A stretch of DNA of 64,000 bases, taken from NCBI GenBank assembly GCA_002189035.1, contig NEEC01000009.1, positions 2,852,001 through 2,916,000 of the forward strand, given 5' to 3'. Source of the DNA: Utricularia gibba (taxonomy: Eukaryota > Plantae > Magnoliophyta). Numbering within the stretch: the stretch's first letter is position 1; each line of letters begins with the position of its first letter. The position numbers and the translations under genes were made by a program. Below are positions 43,218-60,765 of this stretch, piece after piece. The notes below the pieces were generated by a model. That model was not told the DNA's origin. It saw only the letters and a list, made by a program, of their open reading frames with translations, and searched no databases.

Positions 43218-43782
43218 CCTCCGAAAACCCACTGTTCAATAAACAACACCCCAGACCATCACTTGACTACAAACTCAATATAAAACCACCATGTTTGAAT
43301 TCAGAGTAACTGACAAACACAGCAAGACCCCTGCTTCCATTACGTAGAGAAAGGGGAGAAGTAACGACTTTTAAGAGTGACAGGAGGAGCAAAGGAAAAC
43401 TACACAGGAGAAGCAAGAACGCGTGAGGACTTTGTTGAGTCTGCGAGAAAATCTTTTCTTTCTCCATAAGGTATGGTTTTTCCAACTTTTGACTAAGACG
43501 CTGATTTGCCCTGCTTTAAACACACGGTTTAGTCATTAATTAAGAACAATTATCACCACATTAAGTAGCCATAGATGTAATTAAATACTGCAAATAACCG
43601 CAATTGGAAGGAATCCAGCTACCAACATTAAAAAAACATTCATCATGTCCTGCATGTGAGGATAAGTTGCTGTTGATGATTGATGCATGGGCTGGGCTGG
43701 CTGTGTTCCTGTTTTGTTGCTTCCCTTTTCCATAAAGCTGCTCCATGGTTCCATCCATCTATCCATCAGGCATCCTGTACAA

Positions 43783-43808
43783 GGAACTGGGAACTGGGAA
43801 CTGGGAAC
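43783..43808 (+). repeat. 7-bp tandem repeat (GGGAACT) x ~3.7, G-quadruplex-like
   Basis: ggaactgggaactgggaactgggaac seen directly. Confidence 0.8.
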
Positions 43809-43940
43809 ACACCCACACAAACCCTGCAAAAGTGGCCCATCTCATTCTCCCCCCTTTCTCTAATTTCGCCTTCCTCCTCCTCCTCCTCCTCCTCTCTCGC
43901 TCTCTGCTGTGCAGCACCGCTCCCCCGGATTCGCAAGTTC

Positions 43941-44024
43941 CTTCATGCTTTTCCACAGCTTTCTTGAACTTACTCCTGCCTTCTCCAGATGTCAGTTCAA
44001 GGACGCTGCGGGAAAATTTGATGT
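43941..44024 (+). ncRNA. MIR396: MIR396 precursor (miR396b-type mature)
   Basis: Mature UUCCACAGCUUUCUUGAACUU at 43951-43971. Star GUUCAAGGACGCUGCGGGAAA at 43995-44015 pairs with 2 mismatches, 2 G:U and a 2-nt 3' overhang. The loop is 23 nt. Confidence 0.93.
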
Positions 44025-45341
44025 ATCTGAACTTCCAATCCCCAAGGTAACGCTTCTCACCAACTTCACTTCCCCCACCTGGTTGTCTGGATTTTCTTTC
44101 TCGTACGGATCCAAGGAGACAAAAAAAAAAGTTACCTTTCACCTGTTTAGTGCAAGTTACCTTGGATTTGGAGTGTTTTTGTTCTTCAAATTGGATCAAA
44201 AGTAGGTTAAAAACCTCTTTTTACCTACTGTCATCTTGCTCTTCAGGCTCCACTTTGCATTCTTATCAACTCCTGTGTTTTGGGCTTAGTGGGCCCCTTG
44301 CATCATTTTCACTGTCCAAAATCATATGAAATAAATTAACTACTTTTGTAAATGATCTCATATTACTCTAATGGCATTGGCATTGGCATAGGCATAGGCA
44401 TAGTACCATTTTACATTCCACAGGGGCACCACATCTCCTTGGTACTTGACTTAGGAGGTCCATGCTTCCATATTTTTATAAATCCTAACAATAGATTTTC
44501 AAAACATGCGTGATTCGTAAAACATTTGTATAATCTATGCAAAAAACATCTTTCAAAACTATTAACGTCTCTTAATCAAACGAGTTTTATATTTCAACTA
44601 TTCTAAACTCATATATCAAACACAATATCATTTTAATATATGCTCCTAAAATCCATTCATACAAATAACTTAAATATATTATTAATTAAATTAATGAATC
44701 CAAAAAATGAGGGAGATAGATAAAATTATATATGATAATTGCGTACGTGTGCAGGGCAAATGAAAGGATTGATTCAGATGTCAGAGAAGATTCCCTGCCC
44801 TTGTTTCCTCTTTGTCATAACTGAATTCACCTTTTTTATTTATTATTTTACATTTATCCTCATCAATGTCAAAATATTACAATAAAACTTATTTAATTTT
44901 CATTATATACAAAAAACAAACAATTGAACCATTATAATTTATTTATAAACTATGTTATTAATTAAATGTATTATTTATGTTTCATGATTATCGTATTGAC
45001 ATAATAACATATTATCATATCAATCCACATGCACCATAGGGTTAAACATGTAAAATAAAAAATATTTAAAAGGTTAGTTTACTGTTTAAACATTAATGTG
45101 TTTGATAATAATATATGTTTGATAAACTAGTTTAACAATACACAAATATTTTACAAAACTACTATAAAATACTCCCTCTGAATTAGGTATTTCAAGATTT
45201 ACATTTTATGTGAGTTCTAAACAATTCAATTTATAAGGTTTTTTTTAAAATACATCTCCCAAACATAATATTATTTTAAAAACATGTATTTAAAACCTAT
45301 GTACCAAACAAACTTTCATGTTAATTACATATATAAGCCGA

Positions 45342-46071: not shown

Positions 46072-46429
46072 AATGTTTGGGAACCTGATTTTCCAGAAAA
46101 GTTTCTAAAATGTCAAATACCAACTCAAGATTATTAGGTCTAGCATGCCGCCAAGTGCCAATGGAGCACGGGTAGGATTCCCTTTTGTGTTGGCAGCTAT
46201 TGATGCTTGACTGGTTCAACCAGCGCCCCACAATTGGGAGGCGAAGATTCCAAGAACCCCCTGCTCATCTTCTCCTGCTCCCCTTTGGGAAAATAATCCA
46301 ATGCTTCTGGTCCTTCATAAAGTGTGATATAATGTCGCGTAAAGCCCTAAAGTGGGTGCCTTCTGAATTCCTTAGCAACTCAGATCCGATCTGGGTTTAT
46401 GGGTAGAGGACGTGGTATTTATTTGTTCT

Positions 46430-46540
46430 GTCCTGACAGAAGAGAGTGAGCGCTCGCCGGGTGCAATTGGGTACCGAATGAAGGAGAATGTTGTGGTGCC
46501 TTTGCGTGTTTGCGTGCGCTCACTTCTCTTGCTGTCGGGC
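46430..46540 (+). ncRNA. MIR156: MIR156 precursor copy 1, variant mature UGACAGAAGAGAGUGAGCGC
   Basis: Mature at 46434-46453; 3' arm GCGCUCACUUCUCUUGCUGUCGG (~46516-46538) pairs all 20 nt with two 1-nt bulges. Confidence 0.9.
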
Positions 46541-49041
46541 GGGTGATGACGTTCATTCATCTCTCTGATTTCCCTCACCTTCACTCTCTCGCTTCTCAGA
46601 TCTTGCTTCCCATATTTCTTGATTAATGAAAAGGTTGTAACTTGCACAGCAGCCGCCGCCGCACTGTCAAAGACGAGAGATTATTTTTAGGTTTCTGCCG
46701 CACGCAAAGAACACACTTTTCTGTACGATTGCCTAGAATGATTTCAGCCCCTTCCCTTCCTTTAATTCTTCTTCTGTTTATCCTTTCGTTATTCTTTTTC
46801 TCTAATATAGCTACAGCAAGTAGCAAGTAACCTGTTTTAGCCCCCTGAGGAGATGATTCCCTTCGGCTGAGAAGACGATCTTCGCTTTTATTTCACTTTT
46901 TAACCATCCATTAGTGCCTCTTTTCTGTATCCACTTACCTTTAGAAGCATGATTTGAAATTTTTTTTTTGTTGAGTGGGTTGAATTCGCCTTAGGATATG
47001 AGTAAAAATAGCTGTGATTATGAGAAATAATGAGCCCGTAGACGATGGTTATGAGGTTTTTATGCTACGGTAACTTATATTGTGATGATCTGGATGCCAA
47101 GCTTAGGTTTATTTGATGAATCTTCTTTCGTTGGAGAGTTGAGGTATCAATTGTATTGTTTGTGCAGAAGCAGTCGATGTGGATTTCTTTACCCGTGTTG
47201 TAATATACTGTGGCATATTATGGGAGTTAGATATTGGTCTAATGTAAGAGCCACACGTGTGAAGTTTATGGTAAGAACAACCTCCACTGTGTCCATTGCT
47301 GTAGAGCTTTGCAGCGGCTCCGTGTGTGGAGGCCTCCCTTGCTGATTGTCTTTCATTAGCCACTTTCTCCAGGTAGTGCCTTTTAACTTGGAGCTTTCAT
47401 GTTGAATTCCTTGGAATATGCGGCAACTGTTTTGATTTCACCATGGCAGTGTCCTATTGTGCTGTGAACATGAAAGCTTACCAAAAGAATGGCTTGCATC
47501 GCAATCTCCTTCTTGAATGCAGAGTGAAGCTTTCAACAAAAAGAAGGGTTCAAGCTTTGACTGAACCTCAGCTCTTCTCCATTCCCATCACCTAATAGTT
47601 GATTCATCGACCACAGGAAGCAGCTACCAAGTTACAGTTTCCATGCAGGATGCCGGTCGCCACAGTGGCCATGTGCTTGCAACATCTCGATTTGTTCTGT
47701 TGTATCCTGAAGAAGAACTGGAAGATTATGTTAGTTTAACAGTCTCTCTGATGCCTCTTGCAAGACAAATGGCGTTTTTACCACTTTCTGTACATGCAGC
47801 GTTTACTGGCAGCAAAAACACCATGCCCCTTTCTCCACGGCCATGATTTACTCCAGGAACATCCCTGCGTGAATCCCAGGCTCCAGAACCAGTAGGGCTA
47901 CTGCACACAAGCCTAATCCTTATGCCTTCAGGACGCTCTTTCTTTCTGTTCAGTCACTTCATGGTGTACTTTGAATTGCAGATCACGTCCAGTGGGCCAG
48001 ATTTGGGTCACCAGTGGAGGGTTTGCCGACCCTTGGCCCAAGAACCCAGTACTGGCGGCCCGATCTCCGTACCCTGCCTCAAAACACGTTTTCTAAATAC
48101 AAATATATTTAAATTATATTAATAATATAACATATAACTTATAAATTTATAAAATATGCCATTTACTTATATAAATCGATCATATTAAAAATACAAATCA
48201 ATACTATAAGAATTATTCTTAATTCTTATAAACATATATGAGTTGTAATACTTGAAAATAGTTTGGGTTTAATTTCTTTGAATTTTTATTTTCATTGGAG
48301 CAACGGAATCCGACGCAAATATTCTTCAAGGCATGTGAACTAAAGACCGCCACGTGGGCACTAATTTGTAGTACACAAATATATTCGGAAAATAGAAAAT
48401 CAGAAAAAGCGTGTTACTCTTAAAACTGCGATTAAACTTTCTTGAGAATGGCGTGTTTGACTCGCAAGCATTTTCTTTTTCTGATTTTAAATATTAAACA
48501 AAAAGGCTGACAACAATTTAAACCGGAAATGACGTTTGACAAGACAACCCCCACGGTTGTCGGCAACGTGGGCCCCCTTCAAATATTATCAACCCATTTG
48601 CTTCTTTTTTTTTGTTTAAATTCCTTTGGATTAGAATTTTGACTTGGTCCAATCGTTTCTTAATTATTTTGACGTCATAAAAATATTCTCTAAAACAACA
48701 CTATAAAAAATAAATTCTTTTTTAAATACCAAAAATAATAATTTATTTCCCAAAATATTAGTAGATACCTACCCCGTGCATTATTTAAAATATGTTCTAT
48801 TTTTGTTTCCACGCTATTGTACTTTTGTTCGACGTCCTTCAACCCAAGTCTATAGTGAAGATTGTAACGGTGTAGTATGTGAAATGACAATTAAACCCTT
48901 CTCTCGAATCGATTTAAACTGTAATTTATCTAAATATTTCGGAAGTATTTTAATGAAAATTATCTCAATTTGTAATGGTTTCACCGTGATATTTTTTAAA
49001 ATAAAATGGATAAAAAAGCGCACCCTCAAATAAAATAAAAG

Positions 49042-49168
49042 AGGGTATTTGTAAATTAATTTTAAAATTAAGGGTATTTGTAAATTAATTTTAAAACTAA
49101 GGGTATTTGCGTCAGATCAAGTTGGACAGATAGGAGTTGTAAATTAATTAATTTTAAAATTAAGGGTG
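49042..49168. repeat. 29-bp AT-rich tandem repeat (agggtatttgtaaattaattttaaaatta) x ~2.4 plus a displaced partial copy
   Basis: Units start at 49042, 49071 and 49100; a partial copy lies near 49137-49168. Confidence 0.8.
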
Positions 49169-50799
49169 TGGGCGTTCCCACCGTATCATGTCCGCACCTC
49201 CATCGACAGTTGATGATACCAAATAATTACTATTTACAAATTATTATCAATAAAATTAAATAAATAAATTTAAAACATGATGACGACATTCGTGTCCTAT
49301 CGAGACAGCTTAGTTAGAACGTACGTCCAATAACAAATTTAACATCTATTCAATAATAATAAATACTTTATGATATAAATAGATATTTTTAATTTTAATT
49401 TATTTATGATTCGCCACCTCCGACATTTCTCTATTTAGATTATGATACGACATGAGTCAAGGAAACGACCACGTAAGTAAAAGTCGGACAATGTAGTAAT
49501 TATGTTTTTATTATTTAATTATATAATATATTTATAATATATCTATTTTCTGTTAAAAAAAAAAACTTTACTATATCCTTTTCTTTTTAAAATGTATTTT
49601 TCTCAAATTTTATCATATCCTCTTCTTTTTTTTTCTTTTGAATAGCGGTTTTTGTTTTTTTATTTTTATTCACCGCTTTTAAAAATTATAAATCTATTTT
49701 TCAATTACTAAAATGCTATTTAATCATCTACCCAGGCAACAAACTACTACTTTGATGCCTCTAACGAAACACAAATGTTGTCACGTACAGCATATTGTCA
49801 AATGAGAATTTGAACATTTCAATGTACTACAAATTTTGAACGTATATCAATCGATTCATGGAAGCAATTGATCTAAATACGACCACATTCATAGTGTGTT
49901 TGGTTATTACATTCAAATATACAGTGATGATATCTTTATGGATGGAGGATGAAACGTTTCTAAATAGAAGATTTATTCTAATCTTGCATAAACTTATTTT
50001 CACTGTTATGGAGAATGTAAAACCGTAAAAGTTAGATTGGCAAAACGAACAATATTGTATATTAATAACATGATACAATATTAAATAAGCAATGGGTGGA
50101 GTTTGGAGTTACATATCCTAAATTTTCGGGATATCAAATCTAATATCACTTAACACACTTGATATTATGATATATTTATTAAAACACGTTAGCATCATCC
50201 ATGAGCTGGATGCTACGTATTGAAGATGCGCATCACCGGTCCTATGTGCATACAGCCTCTTCAATTGTAAAAAGCTATTTTTTATGGAAATATAATAAGA
50301 ATTGAAAAAATCAATTTTGATTTTAATTTTAATTTTTTTTGGGTGCGCACTGTTGAGGGTTGATAAGACATGTCGAATGTCAGTAGAAGAACTTCAAATC
50401 ATTTGACTGACTGTCAGTTATGTCCGTCAACCGCACTTATTTCCTTCTCTTCTTTTCATACCCCCAAATCTTTTACATTATTTCACTCTCACTCACTCCA
50501 GGCAGTAAATTATATGTAATAATTGTTTTTTTATTTATTTCCAGGCAGTGAAAATAGGGTTTAGTTATGTGGTAAAAAAATGGGGTAAATAGGGTTGGGG
50601 TGAGAATGGGTCCAAAAAAGAGATAAGATAAGGTTGTTTGGGGTATAAAATAAAGATGGTAAATTAGTTGTGTACAGGAATGAATGATATTTATTTTGAA
50701 TATAAAAAAAATAATACTAAAAGGAAAAGGAAAATTACAAGGGAGGGAGCGACAGTGCAATCCATCGCCCTTCCCCTTTTTCATCCTGGAAACCGAAGC

Positions 50800-52490
50800 A
50801 TGAACAATGAGGAATCCCTCAGATCTCTCTCCTTTGATTATCTCAATCTTCTAATCAACGGTCAGGCCTACAGCGATGTGACCTTCGGCGTCGAGGGCCG
50901 CGTCGTTCACGCCCACCGCTGTATCCTCGCCGCCCGTAGTCCCTTCTTCCGGAAATTCTTTGCCGCCGGGGAGCAATCCTACACCGCCGCCGCCGCGCAG
51001 GTGGTGGTCCCGTTGAATTCCGTCAGCTACGAGGTGTTTATGCTGATGCTCCAGTTTTTGTACAGCGGCCAGGTTTGTATCGTTCCCCAGAAACACGAAC
51101 CTAGGCCTGACTGCAGCGTGCGTGGGTGTTGGCACACGCATTGCTCCTCCGCTGTAGATCTCGCCGTACAAACCCTAGCAGCCGCTAGATCCTTCGGGGT
51201 GGAACAGCTTGCTTTGCTCACTCAGGTTCTGTGTTTCTTCCTTGCTTACACTTCCCCCCTCGTTAATTGCTTTTCACAGAGAAAAGTGATTTGATGAACT
51301 AGTGTTCCGTCTGTGCTTCCTTTCCTAGAATCTTCTTCCTTATCATTAGATTTTTGTTTAAGTCTGCACAAAACCAGATTGAAACCCCTAAACGCCTTGA
51401 AGTGGCTAGGTTTTTTTGGCTTGGAAGTTTCCTATTTTGGATTCTTTCTGTGCAAGTCTAATCAGCTTACATGGTGTTGGCAGAAGCAATTGGCGATCAT
51501 GGTTGAGAAAGCTTCCATTGAAGATGTTATGAAGGTTCTGATAGCCTCAAGGAAGCACGAAATGCAGCAACTGTTGAATACTTGTTCGCAGCTTGTTGCC
51601 AGATCAGGCCTCCCGCCGGAGATGCTGGCCAAGCATCTTCCTGTGGAGCTGGTGGCCAGAATCGTAGAGCTTCGAATCCAGGTTGTTGCAAAAAATATAT
51701 ATAGCAGCACGTACCAGATAGTTATTTGAATATGTGCGTATTGAATAACAATTTGACTGTTGCTGCTTTGAGGTAGGCTTCAGTTTCCTGCCAGCAACTC
51801 CTAGGCCCACATTCGACGGGAGAAATGGACCAGAAAATCCGGCGGATGCGGAGCGCGCTCGACGCCTCCGACGTGGAGCTTATAAAGCTGATGGTTATGG
51901 AGGGGTTGAATCTAAATGAAGCATTGGCTCTGCACTACGCCGTTGAGAATTGCAGCAGAGAAGTAGTAAAGGCTCTACTGGAGCTCGGCGCTGCGGATGT
52001 TAACTACCCCGCCGGGCCGGCGGGGAAAACCCCACTCCATTTGGCGGCAGAGATGGTGTCGCCGGAGATCGTGTCCGTGCTTCTCGACCACCACGCGGAT
52101 CCGAACAGCAGAACCGTCGATGGAGTGACACCGATGGACGTTCTCCGAACCCTAACCTCCGACTTTCTCTTCAAAGGAGCGATCCCAGGGTTAGCGCACA
52201 TCGAACCCAACAAGCTCAGGCTTTGCCACGAGCTTGTGCAGTCCGCGGTGGATGTGATAGCAAGGGAAGACGCAAATGCTGCCGCTGCCGCTGCCGCAGC
52301 CGCCACCGGTGATCACGGGAGAGAGTCGAGTTCCGGCGATGGTGGACCAAACGCCGTGTTCTTAAATCTGGTAACCGGGAAAACAGGTGACTCCGAGCCG
52401 AGCAGCAGCAGGCGACGTCGAAGGGATGCTGCCAACCGCCGGGGATCTTCTTCTTCCTCTTCCACTTCGTCCATGTACCACCATTTTTAA
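50800..52490 (+). CDS. BOP: BLADE-ON-PETIOLE-like BTB/POZ-ankyrin protein (NPR5/6 clade), divergent, 3 exons
   Basis: EESLRSLSFDYLNLLINGQAYSDVTF, AHRCILAARS, KQLAIMVEKASIEDVMKVL, DQKIRRMR.ALD.SDVEL, GKTPLHLAAEMVSP and EPNKLRLC. Exons are 50800-51225, 51484-51681 and 51777-52490. Confidence 0.92.
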
Positions 52491-54018
52491 CTGAACTCTC
52501 CTAATAATAATAATCTGGACAACCCCTTCTTCATGCGCCATCAATGCAGACGGCTGCCTTAAAACCAGGTGCCAAAATGCTTTTCAAAGAAACCCCTCGA
52601 ACTCCTCCTCCTCCTCCTACCTCTGGAATCCAAACAATCAACAACAACAGCAAAAACGAAGATCCAGTCTCACAGCTCTCTGAAAACCAGCAAAGTTTTG
52701 CATGAGAAGGGCGACGAGATTCCACTCACCGCCGGCTATTACAATATCACACGGCTTCTGAGTTTGTCGGTTTTGTGTTCCATGATGCTTTTCCTTGACC
52801 TCACACCCCACTACAGTGGACACGGGAAACCGTTTTCTGACATGAACAACAAAGTTCCAGTCCCAGGGCTCATCTATTTTCTTTTCGTACCCCACGGTTT
52901 TTCAATAATTTTAAATGCCCCCAACCCGCCCCAAACCCAACCTATAAATATATTCTATTGCATGTACAGAATTGGCATGAAACGTTGTCGTTTCCCTGCC
53001 CTACTTTCGCCTTTATGTGTATTGCAGTACAGTGTGCTATTAACAAAGATTATACAAATAGGGGATATAACGTAAAATAATTTGATTAATTATATATTTA
53101 AATCATTTATTATTGGATTGGATCGAATAGATTTTCTAAAATATTAAAAAAATGAAATTGTGGGGTTTAGAAAATGCTTTATAAATATATTTTATATATA
53201 ATATGTTTTATGATTAATATCAGTAAAATTAAACGACTTAAATCAGAAAATGAATAAAAATTATTTTTAAAATATCGAACTCTAAATAATATACTAATGT
53301 GGGCTTTTTGGACCGGCCCAATATCCATCTTTTCTGGAGGCCGTCTTTCTGCTGGGTGATTTGAAAACCCAAAACGCAGAGTGGAGAAGCTTCTTCTCGT
53401 GTACAGACGGCCCTGCGGCAGAATTGCTGCCGGAATGAACCTTGCCGGTGTGCCTTGGCGTCGAAGGCGAATTGGAAAAGAAAAGGGGCCCGATTAATAC
53501 ACGAAAATGGGGCATTCTCCATTTGATCGTTCACCCTAACTAAGGATTTCATGTCTGATGAATGGGATCCCGATGTTGGCAATCGTAGCACCTTCAGATG
53601 CTGATCTGGGGTTTGCATTGGATTATCCGCAAACCCTCGCTCATCGTTGCAGTCGACAAATATGCTCATTTAGTTTGATGATTGGATTGTAGCAAAACCC
53701 TTGGATTCACATCCGATGATGTCCAATCGTTGTCATGGGTTTCCTTTCGAGTATGGAAATTAGATACACTTATCGCGGTCTACGGGCCCTACTACCAAGG
53801 CGCCATAACTGTGGCCATCAGACATCTACGGACCACTAGCTTTATTTAGCGGTGGAAATGGCCGAAGCCGTACACCAGGAAGAATCAAAAGGTACTGTTC
53901 CCAGATCTGCTGCTGCACCAGCCCACAAGCAAAACCCTAGTTTTTGAAAACCAAGTTCGGTTTTTTCAGATCTGGGGGTGTTTTTTTTCCCCTTTGGATC
54001 GGAGCGGGGTGAAAAAGG

Positions 54019-54105
54019 AGTCTGACAGAAGAGAGTGAGCGCTCGCCGGCGAATGAAACGGGTTCCTTCGCATTCGCGTGCGCTCGCTTATCTTGCTGTC
54101 AGGTT
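54019..54105 (+). ncRNA. MIR156: MIR156 precursor copy 2, variant mature UGACAGAAGAGAGUGAGCGC
   Basis: Mature at 54023-54042; 3' arm GCGCUCGCUUAUCUUGCUGUCAG (~54080-54102) pairs with two G:U and two bulges. Confidence 0.9.
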
Positions 54106-55644
54106 TTAGTTTGCATCTTGTTCCTGTGATTCGGCTCCCCTCTCTGCCCTTTTTAATTTTTTCTCGTAGCTTCCGTGGCCTCTGGAAAGCGTGGATGAAA
54201 TCTGTGGCAGTAAAGTGGAGAAAGCAAGATCCTTCGCTTCCTGTCACACGCCAAGGGTATGTTGGAGGGCGAATAGGGTGAGTCATTTTCACCATTCTGC
54301 TGCTGTGTTTACTCGTTCTTTTTTTATGCAATATTTTGGGATGCCGATGCACCAATGGGGGGAGCACCAGAGCCTCCGCTGTCATCCAATGAAGACAAAC
54401 CAGCTCTAGGGTCTTGCGGTAAACTCTTGCACTATTCTCAGTCTCTTTCTATTCCTCCACACAAGGGCTAGATTGTGTGCCCCATTTGCCATGCTTAGGG
54501 TGACTATGCGTCTTTAATCAACAGTAGAGTCGTTCTTAACATCAGTCAAATCCATCAGAGTCATTCCACGCAAGGGCTAGCTCAGATGACAGTTGCAGGA
54601 ATGGCCTTTGCGGCGAAGGGGAAGACAGACATCATCACACTAACCATTTCCAAAAAGCCCTATGTATGAAATCAGAACACATGAATGCTAACTTCCAGCA
54701 TGGCATTTGCACCTGAACTCCGAAAGAACCTTCTTTTTTTCAGAACTAATTGAAACTACCAAGACCATGCTTGGGTAAAAAGAAAAACAAAGTGTGCCCC
54801 TTCAATGATGCATTCCTCCCATGGCTTCTTTTTCTTTCTTCCTTCACAGCTGCGCTTGTCTGGTTTTCAAATCCAATGTCTTTAAATCCCACAAACAACC
54901 ATAGCTTGTGATTCCATTCAAAGTACAAGCAAGCATTGATTCATTCATTCCTTGTTGTGTTCCCCCCGTTCTCAAGGACTCATGATATAAAAGCAATGGC
55001 CCTGATTCCTGATCACGCCGGGACTCTCAGAAGATTAGCACACAAGCTTATACCATCCTTAAAGTGCCCCGCCGTACGTTCCTGAGATGTCGGAATAAAT
55101 TCCCCAGACAAGCCTTTGCCCCATTGTCACTTCCTTTGTGCTTTAAATCGCCGCAGCACTTAACACTTCTTCATATAACTGTATGAGATAAATAGCTTTC
55201 AAAAACACCCTATTTTTCAAAAGTTTTTTTTAAAAAATAAAATAAGCAAAAGTAAAAAAAAAAAAAAACGAAAAATAAATCAATAAATAATAAAAATAAA
55301 GATTTGGTTGGATATTTGAATTTCCCATCCCGAGATCTTTGGGTCGTGGAGGACCCTAATTGGGTCGCTCCCTGTTTTGGACGGCCACTTCATCCCTTCG
55401 GCACAGCCTGATGCCCTCCCCCCGCCCCGACGATAAAGCTGAAGGTTAGGGTTTCGGGCAGTAAATAAAGCTGGAGACGATGAATGCAGCGCCGCACCCA
55501 AATCCTGACCTAATCCCTCGCCCTCCCACTCCGCCATGGAGGAGTGGATGGGCAAACCAATGCCATTCAGCAAGCCCTAGTTTAATGTTTCTGTCTCGCC
55601 GGTGAAGTGTTTGTCTCAGGGATCGGAGAAGGGGAACAGCAGCG

Positions 55645-55736
55645 AATCTGACAGAAGAGAGTGAGCGCCCGCCGGCAAATGAACAACCCTGAGTACATTT
55701 GCATCCGCAGGCGCTCACTCATCTTGCTGCCAGGTT
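55645..55736 (+). ncRNA. MIR156: MIR156 precursor copy 3, variant mature UGACAGAAGAGAGUGAGCGC
   Basis: Mature at 55649-55668; 3' arm GCGCUCACUCAUCUUGCUGCCAG (~55711-55733) pairs with two bulges and one A-C mismatch. Confidence 0.87.
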
Positions 55737-58700
55737 CTTTTTCTTCTTCATGACACTGTTTCCCCCTCCAGGTTCCTTTTCTTTTTTTTTTTTTTTTTTT
55801 TTCTAATCTTCATCCTGTAGTGTTGCCCTCGATGGGCAAAACGCGACGATGATTTGCTATCTGTCAAACCTCCTTAGCTACCCTTTTGAGATGAGATAAC
55901 ATGGAGCTCAGTCGTTTTCAGTCCCTTTGTGGATCCCTCTTTCTGCTCTGCATTGAATTGGATATGCTGTTGGGGGATTGTCTCCAATAGAATTAGGGTT
56001 TAGGCATGATCATTATATGGAAGATTAGGTCATGTTGGATATGCTTATTTATTCCTTGAACACAACATATGGTCTTTTCATTTTACATTATATTTAAATG
56101 TCATTTGATATCAATAAAATGGAATTTCAGAAAAAAAAAACGAATAGTAAAGTTAATTTCGTATTTTTAATCATGAAATTAGTTAAATGTATTAAGTACA
56201 TGAAATTATATTTCACCATAAATTTATTAATAAGTAAATAAGAAAATTGTATTGTCAAGTGATGTAAGTTTTATTAATTGAGAAAGATTTATTTTTATTC
56301 CATTTTAAATAAATATTTATAAAACTTGTATATAAAACATTTTCTCAATTTTAATCGTATAAGTTATATTTATTGTATATAAATAATTATATATCTAATC
56401 TTGAATATTCTTTTTTATTTTTATTTAAATGAAAAAAAAACCCATTAGTTTATGTGTGCAGAATAAATAAGTTAATTATTAAATTAAAAGAGAGAGTGCG
56501 TCTTTTAATATTTAATATTATGAATTTATTTTTGGATGAAGACGACGGCGAAGGGAGTTTCGATGGGAGCAAATTGGGTCTGGCTTTTGCAGGAGGGAGT
56601 ACTTGCGGTTCACAGTCGCACGGTGCGGCAACTACACTTCTGAGATGCCAATTCGCTCGGAGGGGACGTCAGTTTTAGGGTTTGGGTCTATGGTCCTTAC
56701 GCGCCTCACCTCGATTGGATGCTTTCCGTTATTGGGGTTGCTCACTGCGGCTTCGTTGTTTTTTTCGTCGGAATTTCTGCGCCGAGGCCGTCAATTTAAA
56801 TGGTTCTACTTGGAAGGGAACCAATGAATTCGATTTTTGAAGACTGCGTTCCAACTTTATCATGCGTCTGGGGTCGTATCTGCAGCCGGAAGGTTACACA
56901 AAATTGGTACCCTATTTTGCTGGGTATTTTTTTAAAAAAAAAAATATGCTTGAGATTTTGTATTGTAGAAGGGGGGCGAGGGATTTCCTTTTGTTAATTA
57001 TTTGGAAACCTGCAAGAAACAATGGTGTGTTCATTTCCTGAACAGTTATTTGATTTTCTGCGGAAATGAAAGAACTTTTCATTTTTTTAGTATGGATGAG
57101 TTTTTCATCTCATTTGAATCAGTTATCACTTTTCCGCTGATTGAAAACTTGGCCTTTGTGCGTTCACTCACGAGTTTATAATACACTTCTTGTCTTCTAC
57201 ATTCATGTACTTCAGCTCGTGTTAGGAAGTTTGCCGTTGATAAACAGAATGCCATGCTGAGCATTATTGAAGGAGAAACGTTCCTCTGGAGATCTTAGGT
57301 ACATCGGTTGTGCCTGTGACTGAGGAGGCAGCAGCAATGCAAATATTTGTCATATTTCTAGCACTTCAGAGGAACTTACTGTTATTATTAGATATATCCT
57401 GGAATTTGAATTCCTCCAATGCAGTCATCTTGATGGTAGCCATCTGCAACCGAAATGAAGTCTTGAAGTTAACCTACAGCTCTGGGGTTTAGTTTTATAT
57501 AGCGGCGAACGAGTGACATTGAGATGATCACACACTGGCTTACCGCTTACCTAACGCTGTTTGAATATGCACCCCATTCTGATACTAGTGCAGTTCTGGT
57601 GAAATGAGACCGGTGTCCAGGTTCCAGGTTGGTGCTTTACAGAATCCCCATTCTTCATCACATAACGATTTTTGCATCTTGTATGGATTACATTTAACAC
57701 TTCCGTTGCTTAACTCTTGTATATCCTGTTGAACTCTCCAGATTCAAGATCACATCTGGAGTCTTTCTTCCAGCATTTATTCGATTCATAAAGAAGAAAG
57801 CGTTGCTTTGTTCTGTGCCACTTTATGCAGACTTCCTTTGCGGTGGCTGGTCAACCCGCCACATGGAGCAAACTGCAGCAACTTGGAAGTGTACTACTGT
57901 ACTTGATTCCTCACAGTAGTACTATGCACGATTACTATTTGGAAGGGTACAGTTATTATTTTCGCACTGAATGATAATATTATGTGATTCTGAATTCTAG
58001 AGTATAATTGTATCAAAATATTACAATAACGAATTTTAGTTCCTTTTTCTAAGGTGATGGGTCAACATACTAACCAGAACCTGGCTAAGCCCTTACCAAG
58101 AAGAAAGCATTTTGGAAGGAGAGCAGCCTAGGCCAGGAGTACAAATACAGGGGAGAGGCTTCTCTGGACCATTCAGAAAAGTGGCCACCCTCACTTTCTG
58201 TTTGGAGACTGACTGCTCACGGGCGATTTATTTCAATCGGGTCCTGAAGGCAACATGCCACCAACAAGCAGGACGCATTGGACATGAGCCATGTAAAATG
58301 GGTGTGCTGTTTGTCTTTACATTATACACTGCACCGCTTGGTGCTACGCTGCAGCACACGTAGGATGATGATATTACCAGCATGAGGGAATTCCAGCTTA
58401 GTACTCTTCGGTAAGACGGCCATGCACACTGACCCTGCAGTGTTAATTCTTAGGTAAAGAGAGATACAGCCACCAGAAGAAGATGTGTGGGAATCATGCG
58501 TCCGCCCATCAAGAGATGAAGATGTGGGTGCTCCTCCAATTGCCTACGACCAAATTCTATGTAGCAGCTAATTGAGGAAAGATAACATGTATACTCAAAA
58601 AGATGTGTTTTCTGCAACCCAGAGCTCAAAGCACACATTCACTACCAAAATGAAACTCGTGTTGTAATGGAATCAGATGTGCCAGTGAGATCAAAGAACA

Positions 58701-60109
58701 TTAGGGAAAGACGAGGGAGGAAAAAAAAAGGCACTCCCACCAGCCACCTTGCATTAGAAAATAAATATCAGGGAACTAAAATCATCCACAGAGCGTGATA
58801 CTCAAGACAGCTATCGAGATGCACATAGAGAACAAGAAGTATGCGGACATGTCTAACTACAGATAGATTCTGCAGCCATCAAGTATTTCTAAGTGAAACA
58901 CAATCCAACAGACTGAAACATGAAAGACATGTCCAGGAATGAAATCATATTACTAAGCCAAAACTTGACATTTTCATCCGATCACATTGCATTTCAAACA
59001 CAGGTGCGATGAAGGGCAATGGCACACAAAATGAAGCACAGAAGAGTAATATGCTATAACTCATGACCATCAGTCTTACCCAGGATATCATACAGCCGGA
59101 CAATCAGAAACCCTTTTCTTTTTCATTTACAGTGATCGTGATTCTTTGAATATGCTCTTTGAAGTGAAATAGAATCAACAGCTATATAGAGAGGGAGGTC
59201 CTTACAGAGCAATAGCCAACAAGTTGCATGCCATTGACTTGAGGAGGATGCAAGAAAAACTTCGATGAAGACACTGCAATGTAGGTCCAACACATTCGAA
59301 ACTAATATAGGATACTAATATAGAGAATTTCCATCGTTGAGCATACTATGTAGAATATTCTCAAAGATAATACCCTACAAGATCAAGCACCACAACAAAT
59401 ATGCGAACGTATAATATATCAGCTCACCGAAGGAGGATTGCATCAAACCTATCAGAACAGACAGCAGCAGGCTGATAAGAGATAAACAGCAGAACTGACA
59501 TAAAACACTAAAAACGAATTAACATAAAAATAATTCCCACTCAATACCTTTTCGATGAATAGGGTCCTAACAAAAAGCAAGATGAGAAAGAACCTTATTA
59601 CCATAGTGCAACAACACAAGTTTCGAAAGCGAGGTCATAGAAGATTCTCATAAAGGCTGTTGGAAATTATATGCCTCCGTCTCTAACGTTCACATCTCTT
59701 TTTTAGTTGCTACAAAAGGAGTAGGAAAAAAACAAAACACGCTCACGCTTTGCCTGGAGATAAGCTATGTTAGTTGCCTTACACCCGTTAACACGCCCGT
59801 AAGCTTCAAGGAAACAATACAAAAAAAAAAGAGCTTGAAAACATCGAAATCCAAAAAAAAGGGATCCGGTGAAAGACCAAAAGAAGTGAAATGTGATCAG
59901 GAAATGATCTAAGTAGAGCGGAAAAAGTAACTGGTGAACCTGAAAAACGGTGGATTTACCGTATTTCGTTGGAGTGTTTGGCAGAAAGACGGGTCTACAA
60001 AATTAACTTGTTTTTCACTCTTTAAATTTTTTGCAGTTTTCCATTTCCCCATGGAAAGGAAAAAAAGAAGTGGACAAAAGTTCAGGAAATGTAACAAGAG
60101 ATGCAGAAG

Positions 60110-60195
60110 CAGCTGACAGAAGAGAGTAAGCACACATCGAACAAATGTGCATCATCTACAATTGCCAGCGTGTGCTCACTCTCTTCTGTCAAGTT
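60110..60195 (-). ncRNA. MIR156: MIR156 precursor copy 4, canonical mature UGACAGAAGAGAGUGAGCAC, inverted relative to copies 1-3
   Basis: Plus-strand 60172-60191 is the exact reverse complement of canonical miR156. The partner arm at 60114-60133 gives star GUGCUUACUCUCUUCUGUCA with only one G:U. The upstream TTTCAGATCTG motif is shared with copy 2 in this orientation. Confidence 0.92.
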
Positions 60196-60765
60196 CCGAA
60201 TTTTCCTGCCCCCCTCTCCAGAAAAATTCAGATCTGAAACCCCAGACCCATTGTTCTAAAGAAAACAACATGAACGAAAAATTAACCTTTTGCACATGCA
60301 TTTTGTCGAACAGTTAGCCTACATATTTCAACAAACACACTACAAGCCCTCGAAGGGCGATCTGGACAGAAGAATTCAAAATCGAGGTCGCCTCTGTTTT
60401 TCGCATGCAAGGAGATGCCGGGGCGAAGTAGATTACAAGGAAGATGCCCTATCGGTATACGGAACGGCAGCCTCTGCGTCGGATGACAATCATTTTGTAC
60501 CAAAAGACGAAGCAAACATGGGGAAAGTACACCCCATTAATTATGATTAACTACCCTAATTTCATTCAACTCCACTCCACCATTCTTAAAATAATGATTA
60601 AAAAAGAATAATCATTACATAAGAAATAAAAAACTAATAATGAAAATAAATATAACTGAATTTCCACGCTTTTTGGATGATAATTCTTTTAAATGAAATA
60701 TGCTTTATTTTATATATTTTTAAATTTTTTAACTTGAAATAATGAATTAATTGAATTTGGAAAAT

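Follow-up and report, generated by a model that had tools for sequence, protein, structure and literature searches.

In land plants, the switch from juvenile to adult is controlled by miR156, and few plant miRNA sequences vary as little as the miR156 guide. Pairwise identity between mature miR156 sequences exceeds 95% (PMC4409300). The 64-kb stretch of Utricularia gibba DNA analyzed here (the window) contains three hairpins whose miR156-like guide carries a G in place of A at position 19 (G19), raising the question of whether these are functional MIR156 genes, how they came to share the change, and what the altered guide would do. It is highly probable that they are three genuine, expressed MIR156 genes that descend from one ancestor with a G19-C pair and are largely redundant with canonical miR156.

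Sequence and structure of the G19 hairpins

The 20-mer TGACAGAAGAGAGTGAGCGC is found as an exact match at three positions on the plus strand of the window (Table 1). It has no match in 100 dinucleotide-preserving shuffles, and none is expected by chance. The three hairpins fall within 9.3 kb, with a spacing of 7.6 kb between hairpins 1 and 2 and of 1.6 kb between hairpins 2 and 3. In every copy the guide is a 5'-arm sequence with an initial U that agrees with canonical UGACAGAAGAGAGUGAGCAC at 19 of 20 letters. The opposing star arms read GCGCTC (at 46516, 54080, and 55711). The loops, at 62, 37, and 42 nt, are unalignable, and similarity between the flanks ends 30-50 nt outside the hairpins. 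The G+C content of the G19 hairpins is 55-57%, compared with 45% in a fourth, canonical MIR156 hairpin of the window (hairpin 4).

Table 1. Positions of the microRNA hairpins and of a neighboring spliced transcript in the window.
Feature	Position	Strand	Details
MIR396 hairpin	43947..44022	+	guide 43951-43971, exact match; fold -34.8 kcal/mol, z -3.6
MIR156 hairpin 1 (G19)	46428..46543	+	guide 46434-46453, star 46516-46537, 62-nt loop region
MIR156 hairpin 2 (G19)	54017..54108	+	guide 54023-54042, star 54080-54101
Spliced transcript	54390..54800	+	immediately 3' of hairpin 2; seen in contigs and loose ends of RNA run X6
MIR156 hairpin 3 (G19)	55643..55739	+	guide 55649-55668, star 55711-55732
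MIR156 hairpin 4, canonical	60113..60192	-	guide UGACAGAAGAGAGUGAGCAC at 60191..60172

Hairpins 1, 2, and 3 fold stably, with energies of -61.3, -47.3, and -51.6 kcal/mol and z-scores of -7.0, -4.0, and -6.9. All three folds have the same geometry: a 20-nt guide, a 22-nt star with an asymmetric bulge, and a short structured upper stem. Each duplex contains two 1-nt star bulges, one of them the G in CUUGCUG, and at most one mismatch; hairpin 3 has an A3/C mismatch close to the base. In the Infernal alignment to the MIR156 consensus, position 19 and its partner form a kept but changed pair. RNAalifold reports this pair as G-C in all three G19 hairpins and as A-U only in canonical hairpin 4. An initial annotation of this DNA had described three paralogous MIR156 hairpins sharing A19G, an opposing arm reading GCGCUC so that A-U became G-C, a common bulged G in CUUGCUG, and strongly diverged loops and flanks. 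All of these observations are borne out by the exact matches, the folds, and the alignments.

Alignments of the G19 hairpins to Rfam MIR156 (RF00073) span the full model, positions 1-88, with significant E-values: 50.3 bits (E 3.6e-8) for hairpin 1, 42.8 bits (E 3.8e-6) for hairpin 2, and 37.2 bits (E 1.2e-4) for hairpin 3. These scores, together with the 58.1 bits of canonical hairpin 4, are below the curated RF00073 cut-off of 62 bits. An Rfam scan of the whole window at gathering thresholds accordingly returns no match, and MIR156 is visible only in E-value mode.

MIR156 precursors are cut from loop to base, releasing a guide of ~20 nt and a star of ~22 nt with asymmetric bulges (PMC3787264). 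This duplex form, combined with a short structured upper stem, is a hallmark of loop-to-base processing (PMC3787264, PMC4615586), and Arabidopsis MIR156a/c/d belong to the short loop-to-base class (Bologna et al. 2013, PMC3787264; Lee et al. 2015, PMC4615586). Like these Arabidopsis precursors, the G19 hairpins have a 20-nt 5'-arm guide with a U start; their 22-nt star carries asymmetric bulges of one base each, including one in the star 3' half. The short structured upper stem over the duplex is likewise present, and the 3-bp extension above the unpaired base is conserved. By analogy, loop-to-base cutting by DCL1 would be expected for the G19 precursors. For ath-MIR156c, removal of the corresponding bulge has been shown to shift the guide to 21 nt. 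Unlike MIR156a/c/d, the U. gibba hairpins have G rather than A at guide position 19 and C rather than U as its partner, the bulged base in the star 3' half is a G, and the G+C content is higher.

Expression and duplication history

All three G19 loci are listed in Table S2 of a U. gibba small-RNA survey (Cervantes-Perez et al. 2021, PMC8333044): hairpin 1 as unitig_899:2898407-2898540 +, hairpin 2 as unitig_899:2906016-2906129 +, and hairpin 3 as unitig_899:2907640-2907770 +. The major RNA of hairpins 1 and 2 is UGACAGAAGAGAGUGAGCGC, 20 nt in both cases, and that of hairpin 3 is a 21-mer ending in GCGCC, which extends the guide to 55669; among the copies, the additional C fits hairpin 3 alone. 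The same table lists the MIR396 hairpin as unitig_899:2895922-2896015 +, with UUCCACAGCUUUCUUGAACUU. Order and strand of the four loci agree between the window and Table S2, and the inter-locus distances (2485, 7609, and 1624 in Table S2; 2483, 7589, and 1626 in the window) reflect a coordinate deviation of at most 20 nt across 12 kb. With the MIR396 locus as anchor, the window is thereby identified as U. gibba unitig_899. Since MIR396 and the three G19 loci match Table S2 and the major RNAs end in GCGC or GCGCC, the loci and the variant are expressed and already catalogued. The survey names public small-RNA libraries of U. gibba under BioProjects PRJNA526734 and PRJNA633566. In the available rows of the ShortStack table of that study, Table S2 loci have MIRNA = Y, and an N12 locus is excluded. 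The MIR396 hairpin was absent from the initial annotation.

The 20-mer is identical in the three copies, so the per-locus evidence comes from the published calls and not from reads examined here. These calls, with a GCGC-ending major product at all three loci, support the earlier view of genuine, locally duplicated MIR156 genes. The variant, not recognized in the initial annotation, is already present in Table S2. It is nevertheless undiscussed in the cataloguing paper, in which miR156 comes up a single time, as an abundant family, and the three loci appear without names, structures, or remark on A19G or its compensation (PMC8333044). Several further variant miR156 guides of U. gibba appear in the same Table S2.

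An assembly or sequencing error hiding a canonical CAC ending has a negligible probability. Single-nucleotide indel errors do occur nearby (at 56758, 57483, and 60208), but an error would have to produce the identical substitution and the paired change in three separate copies. In an independent DNA run from 2013, contigs across hairpin 3 leave G19 (55667) unchanged, and the published small RNAs end in GCGC or GCGCC (PMC8333044). The small RNAs and the 2013 DNA contig together refute CAC as the true sequence.

Across the three copies, none of the 20 guide sites is variable, compared with five of 22 star sites; at four of these five, pairing is kept or the site is located in a bulge. An invariant guide, set against a variable star and unalignable loops and flanks, indicates purifying selection on the guide arm and an old origin of the duplicates. 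This supports, for the guide arm, the earlier claim that the duplex is still under selection. The simplest reading of A19G, the U-to-C change, and the bulged G common to all copies is a single ancestral event that the three copies inherited, and not an independent compensation in each. The ancestral copy would have changed from A to G at guide position 19 and from U to C at the star partner before the duplications. The likeliest mutational route would pass through a tolerated G.U intermediate, which costs 0.4 kcal/mol compared with 2.8 for A/C. A kept three-copy locus with an altered guide and a compensated star would then illustrate how a miRNA gene can shift via G.U while retaining its structure.

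Two other accounts of the invariant guide have to be weighed. Gene conversion between copies, in place of selection on each, could keep the guide arms alike, and hairpins 1 and 2 do have an identical 28-nt tract in common and all copies lie close together. That tract, however, coincides with the guide, which itself shares 19 of 20 letters with a miR156 sequence conserved across plants, and the star arms only 40-60 nt from the guide show 3-4 differences per pair of copies. With loops that are unalignable, conversion tracts would need to be unusually short and to land repeatedly on the guide, which makes this explanation very improbable. It is slightly less probable still that the hairpins are redundant duplicates in decay, yielding small RNAs as by-products without a regulatory role. 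The stepwise drop in Rfam bits from copy 1 to copy 3 and the 21-mer produced by copy 3, with its mismatch close to the base, are in line with decay. Against it, the guide has stayed invariant while its surroundings diverged beyond alignment, star-arm pairing is preserved, and ShortStack calls all three loci as miRNAs in published data (PMC8333044). Purifying selection on inherited copies is therefore the preferred reading.

In other plants, tandem and segmental duplications have enlarged the MIR156 family (Zhang et al. 2015, PMC4409300). As in those duplicates, the guide is the slowest-evolving part of the U. gibba hairpins and the loop the fastest. Unlike them, all local G19 duplicates share a derived guide, and copies 2 and 3 lack a visible shared primary transcript. 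The guide also resembles other miR156 isoforms, such as GAGCGAGCAC (zma-miR156k-like, PMC3602245), in having one or two changes outside the guide 5' half. That form and the U. gibba Table S2 variants are still classed as miR156, as the G19 guide is here, but the position altered in G19 is a different one.

A search of the searchable full text for the GCGC ending (20-mer, 17-mer core, and reverse complements) returned only a minor Brassica napus seed read variant without a locus behind it, and the 20-mer has no match in metagenome contigs. The full-text result weakly supports a variant that is not widespread. The neighboring ANTH gene has its best homologues in Lamiales and other asterids, at ~55% identity. 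No miR156 or miR396 lies within 10 kb on either side of the ANTH loci of Paulownia fortunei and Primulina eburnea, an absence that says little because orthology is uncertain and these genomes are larger.

Predicted targeting by the G19 guide

In plants, mismatches and wobbles are tolerated at the guide end that contains position 19. On a canonical SPL site, the G19 guide forms the G:U wobble that the initial annotation had proposed, reaching -32.6 kcal/mol compared with -33.0 for the canonical guide, a cost of 0.4. Pairing with SPL (SBP-box) mRNAs should persist, with a single G:U at the far 3' end of the guide, and AGO1 loading would be expected from the guide's 5' U. Given this small energy difference, redundancy appears the likeliest role in these duplex models, with G19 miR156 acting largely alongside canonical miR156 from other loci.

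Retuned or extended targeting is unlikely, since the change sits at the guide 3' end. Such a subfamily would have co-evolved with GCGCUC target sites or gained targets, becoming sub- or neofunctionalized. If the target site read GCGC, the G19 guide would reach -34.5 kcal/mol, a gain of 1.9, while the canonical guide would fall to -30.2, a loss of 2.8; the retention of three copies with an invariant guide and the further variant miR156 guides of U. gibba in Table S2 (PMC8333044) would also suit this explanation. Yet the altered position is at the wobble-tolerant end, the energy penalty on canonical SPL pairing is slight, and no co-variant site is found within the window. The window likewise contains no SPL gene, SPL site, or target mimic, and matches to the site pattern are hairpin arms only.

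A more specific version is somewhat less probable again. Read in the usual frame, the SPL site has its second letter at the third position of a serine codon, where a change from U to C would be silent. Through this change, some of the SPL genes of U. gibba could have co-varied with G19 and become a subset under preferential control of the cluster. Canonical miR156, facing an A/C mismatch and pairing 2.8 kcal/mol more weakly on that subset, would control the remaining SPL genes. If true, the oldest plant miRNA-target module would have split within one species.

The G19 cluster extends the picture of unusually diversified miR156/157 in the tiny, fast-evolving, odd-bodied U. gibba. Because the change is at a tolerated position and the loci were already catalogued, the practical value is modest; the gain is a tidier cluster annotation that also takes in hairpin 4, missing from the published list.

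Neighboring transcripts and canonical hairpin 4

The spliced transcript downstream of hairpin 2 is a candidate for the tail of the hairpin 2 primary transcript. It has an exon end near 54417, followed by a GT..AG intron to 54498 or 54524, and loose-end sequence from RNA run X6 maps to 54390-54417 with two mismatches. Of sampled words from 53800-56000, 28% are present in X6. No RNA-seq contig covers hairpin 3, and none lies between 54800 and 56400 in three RNA runs, although contigs cannot prove absence. A single primary transcript for hairpins 2 and 3 is consequently unsupported. The primary transcript of hairpin 3 might have had its tail in an abundant spliced transcript at 56557-58706, but ~800 nt without RNA separate the two, and the latter is therefore treated as a separate non-coding transcript.

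Hairpin 4 has a nearly perfect stem without a star bulge. Both its Rfam MIR156 score (58.1 bits on the minus strand, 50.3 on the plus) and its fold energy (-49.2 and -39.8 kcal/mol, respectively) are better on the minus strand. Contigs from run X12 lie on either side of it and lack 60085-60193. An RNA contig from run X6 spans the hairpin, and its sole internal difference, G>A at 60126, retains a G.U pair on the minus strand. Hairpin 4 does not appear in the published miRNA list (PMC8333044) and was missed by the initial annotation; it is newly described here.

The G19 hairpins and their canonical neighbour

The 20-mer TGACAGAAGAGAGTGAGCGC, a miR156 guide with G in place of A at position 19 (A19G), has three exact matches in the window, all on the plus strand, and none in 100 shuffled sequences. 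Sequence reading and folding place every GCGC copy in the 5′ arm of a stable hairpin (hairpins 1–3). Each star arm begins with GCGCUC and has two single-nucleotide bulges, including the G of CUUGCUG. At curated Rfam thresholds the whole window gives no match; scored by E-value, all four hairpins, including canonical-guide hairpin 4, match the MIR156 model along its full length. In the Rfam alignment position 19 and the base opposite remain paired with changed bases, and RNAalifold assigns G-C to this pair in three hairpins and A-U in one. The initial annotation had reported three G19 MIR156 hairpins with a compensatory star change, an observation that holds throughout in the exact 20-mer, the folds, the Rfam alignment and RNAalifold. 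Hairpins 1–3 are MIR156 genes on every structural feature tested and would work like MIR156 genes; only their Rfam scores stay under a threshold, the curated cut-off of 62 bits, as does that of hairpin 4.

miRNA hairpins and neighbouring transcription units (folds in kcal/mol; bits from the Rfam MIR156 model; published loci on unitig_899, plus strand, with their major RNAs, from Table S2, the miRNA locus list of Cervantes-Perez et al. 2021, PMC8333044)
Feature	Position	Strand	Guide	Star start	Loop (nt)	Fold	z-score	Bits	Published locus	Major RNA
MIR396 hairpin	43947-44022	+	43951-43971						2895922-2896015	UUCCACAGCUUUCUUGAACUU
Hairpin 1	46428-46543	+	46434	46516	62	-61.3	-7.0	50.3	2898407-2898540	UGACAGAAGAGAGUGAGCGC
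BTB/POZ–ankyrin gene	50668-53075	+								
Hairpin 2	54017-54108	+	54023	54080	37	-47.3	-4.0	42.8	2906016-2906129	UGACAGAAGAGAGUGAGCGC
Hairpin 3	55643-55739	+	55649	55711	42	-51.6	-6.9	37.2	2907640-2907770	UGACAGAAGAGAGUGAGCGCC
Spliced transcript	56557-58706	+								
Hairpin 4	60113-60192	-	60172-60191			-49.2		58.1		

Hairpin 4, overlooked in the initial annotation, emerged from a mismatch-tolerant search as an inverted pair, with TAAGCAC at 60114-60133 on the plus strand and canonical GAGCAC on the minus strand. The minus strand, which carries the canonical guide, is the better reading, as the plus strand scores 50.3 bits and folds at -39.8 kcal/mol. Its stem is near perfect and lacks the star bulge, so that a 21-mer product would be expected by the result of Lee et al. 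2015 (PMC4615586). Up to 53% of sampled words from its surroundings occur in the RNA runs. One contig of RNA run X6 spans it with a single internal difference, G>A at 60126 in the star arm; read on the minus strand, but not on the plus, the changed base still forms a G.U pair. Contigs of RNA run X12 flank the hairpin and omit 60085-60193, a gap that fits hairpin excision and could equally be an assembly break.

Ancestry and constraint of the variant copies

Outside the hairpin, similarity among copies 1–3 extends no further than 30-50 nt. Upstream and downstream stretches common to both make hairpins 2 and 3 (72% identity over 175 nt) the closest pair; hairpins 1 and 2 share 69% over 107 nt, and hairpins 1 and 3 are similar in the arms alone. 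The guide has no variable site in 20, and the star has five in 22. Three of these five keep pairing (A-U to G.U, G-C to G.U, U.G to U-A), one lies in a bulge, and one is an A/C mismatch in copy 3. The loops cannot be aligned. Assuming ~70% background identity, we estimate the chance of an unchanged 20-nt block in three copies as 0.72^20 x 0.69^20, or ~1e-6, a conservative figure because the identities used include the arms. Identity of the guide block across all three copies would thus be very unlikely without constraint.

The joint occurrence of A19G, the U-to-C star change and the bulged G in all three copies would most simply be the legacy of one ancestor. This pattern points to one compensatory event inherited by hairpins 1–3, not to three separate ones. 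Predicted duplex energies of the four pair states (ancestral A-U -29.5, G.U intermediate -29.1, A/C intermediate -26.7 and derived G-C -31.0 kcal/mol) support a near-neutral mutational path for pair 19. A GC-biased process could have aided the two substitutions, as both are AT-to-GC and the G+C content is higher in hairpins 1–3 (55-57%) than in hairpin 4 (45%). Synteny is uninformative: no miR156 or miR396 lies within 10 kb of the Paulownia and Primulina homologues of the ANTH gene. The best matches of this nearby single-exon gene, from Lamiales and other asterid plants, reach just ~55% identity, a pattern that suggested a fast-evolving asterid.

Bologna et al. 2013 (PMC3787264) assign MIR156 precursors to the short loop-to-base class; these precursors have a structured upper stem, and their products are always a miRNA of ~20 nt and a star of ~22 nt, with asymmetric bulges. 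Two base pairs separate pair 19 from the loop-side cut, and this closeness may plausibly explain why pairing was restored there. The G-C pair is computed to stabilise the guide 3′ end by 1.5 kcal/mol, which should favour guide-strand loading. On a canonical SPL site the G19 guide has a computed energy of -32.6 kcal/mol, versus -33.0 for the canonical guide. The guide 3′ end, where the G19 wobble falls, is tolerant in targeting. Given this and the small energy cost, retained SPL targeting, redundant with canonical miR156, is the best-supported prediction.

Published identity and expression

PMC8333044 was found by searching the literature on miR156 in Utricularia gibba. Successive distances from MIR396 through hairpins 1, 2 and 3 are 2483, 7589 and 1626 in the window and 2485, 7609 and 1624 in that paper. 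A miR396 sequence lies within a plus-strand hairpin at 43951, and the extra C of the published 21-mer fits only hairpin 3 (GCGCC, versus GCGCT in hairpins 1 and 2). The window therefore corresponds to U. gibba unitig_899, and hairpins 1–3 are already published, small-RNA-supported miRNA loci.

For ShortStack, a MIRNA = Y call demands a sequenced star. In the portion of the ShortStack table of PMC8333044 considered here, whose rows precede unitig_899, the Table S2 loci carry this flag and an N12 locus is omitted from Table S2; as star sequences differ among hairpins 1–3, each would have small-RNA support of its own. The major RNA is 20 nt from copies 1 and 2 and 21 nt from copy 3, which bears an additional mismatch close to its base. 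The main text names miR156 once, among five abundant families, and passes over the variant without comment. Because loci and variant products stand in the published supplement, they are already known. New here are the attribution of the compensated pair to one ancestral event, the invariant guide arm set against the rest of the hairpin, the energy estimates, and hairpin 4, which is absent from Table S2. Within searchable full text, with other papers' supplements, miRBase and PmiREN outside the scope, the GCGC ending recurs only in a low-ranking Brassica napus read variant.

Beyond these loci, Table S2 contains two canonical miR156 loci (15,086 major reads at one of them) and four more variant miR156-type major RNAs, with the 3′ parts GUGGGCAU, GAGCGAGCAC, GAGAGGGCAC and GGGAGGGCACU; a miR157 guide and two miR157 stars also appear there as major RNAs. 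The miR156 family is thus diversified in this species, and the G19 form is one departure among several.

Transcripts and neighbouring features

Contigs of three RNA runs (X6, X12 and X16) and one 2013 DNA run were aligned to 54400-60399. A DNA contig (55418-55766) covers hairpin 3 with G19 unchanged, bearing out the assembly base against canonical CAC. The three RNA runs contain no contig over 54800-56400, and show no primary transcript of hairpin 3 and none that would join copies 2 and 3. Just 3′ of hairpin 2, X6 has a spliced plus-strand transcript with an exon end near 54417 and a GT..AG intron to 54498 or 54524, which may be the tail of the copy 2 primary transcript. Over 59201-60399, X12 and X16 contigs are identical to the window; those of X6 differ by ~1-2% in non-coding parts, with several small indels, suggesting a divergent accession or line, or a mislabelled close relative.

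Five miRNA hairpins lie within ~16 kb, the MIR396 hairpin being 2.5 kb upstream of hairpin 1; mechanical ORFs over it (43745-44050, plus; 43759-44199, minus) are probably spurious. The gene between hairpins 1 and 2 encodes BTB/POZ, DUF3420 and ankyrin repeats (NPR/BOP-type architecture), and hairpin 2 begins ~950 nt past its last ORF piece. Between hairpins 3 and 4, the abundant spliced transcript has three GT..AG introns (56905/57215, 57622/57737, 57945/58053). Its longest ORF is at most 63 aa once two assembly indels are corrected, making it a candidate long non-coding RNA. All covering runs, the 2013 DNA run included, have one extra base at 56758 (T), 57483 (G) and 60208 (C); these are likely 1-nt deletion errors of the assembly, which would break reading frames. 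Telobox-like (A/G)CCCTA motifs at 46343-46349, 53932-53939 and 55573-55579 lie 91, 91 and 76 nt upstream of G19 guides 1–3. Hairpins 1, 2 and 4 are preceded at 45-56 nt by a CAGATCTG-type palindrome, degenerate in the case of hairpin 1. Both motifs could be remnants of homology or shared parts of a promoter or leader.
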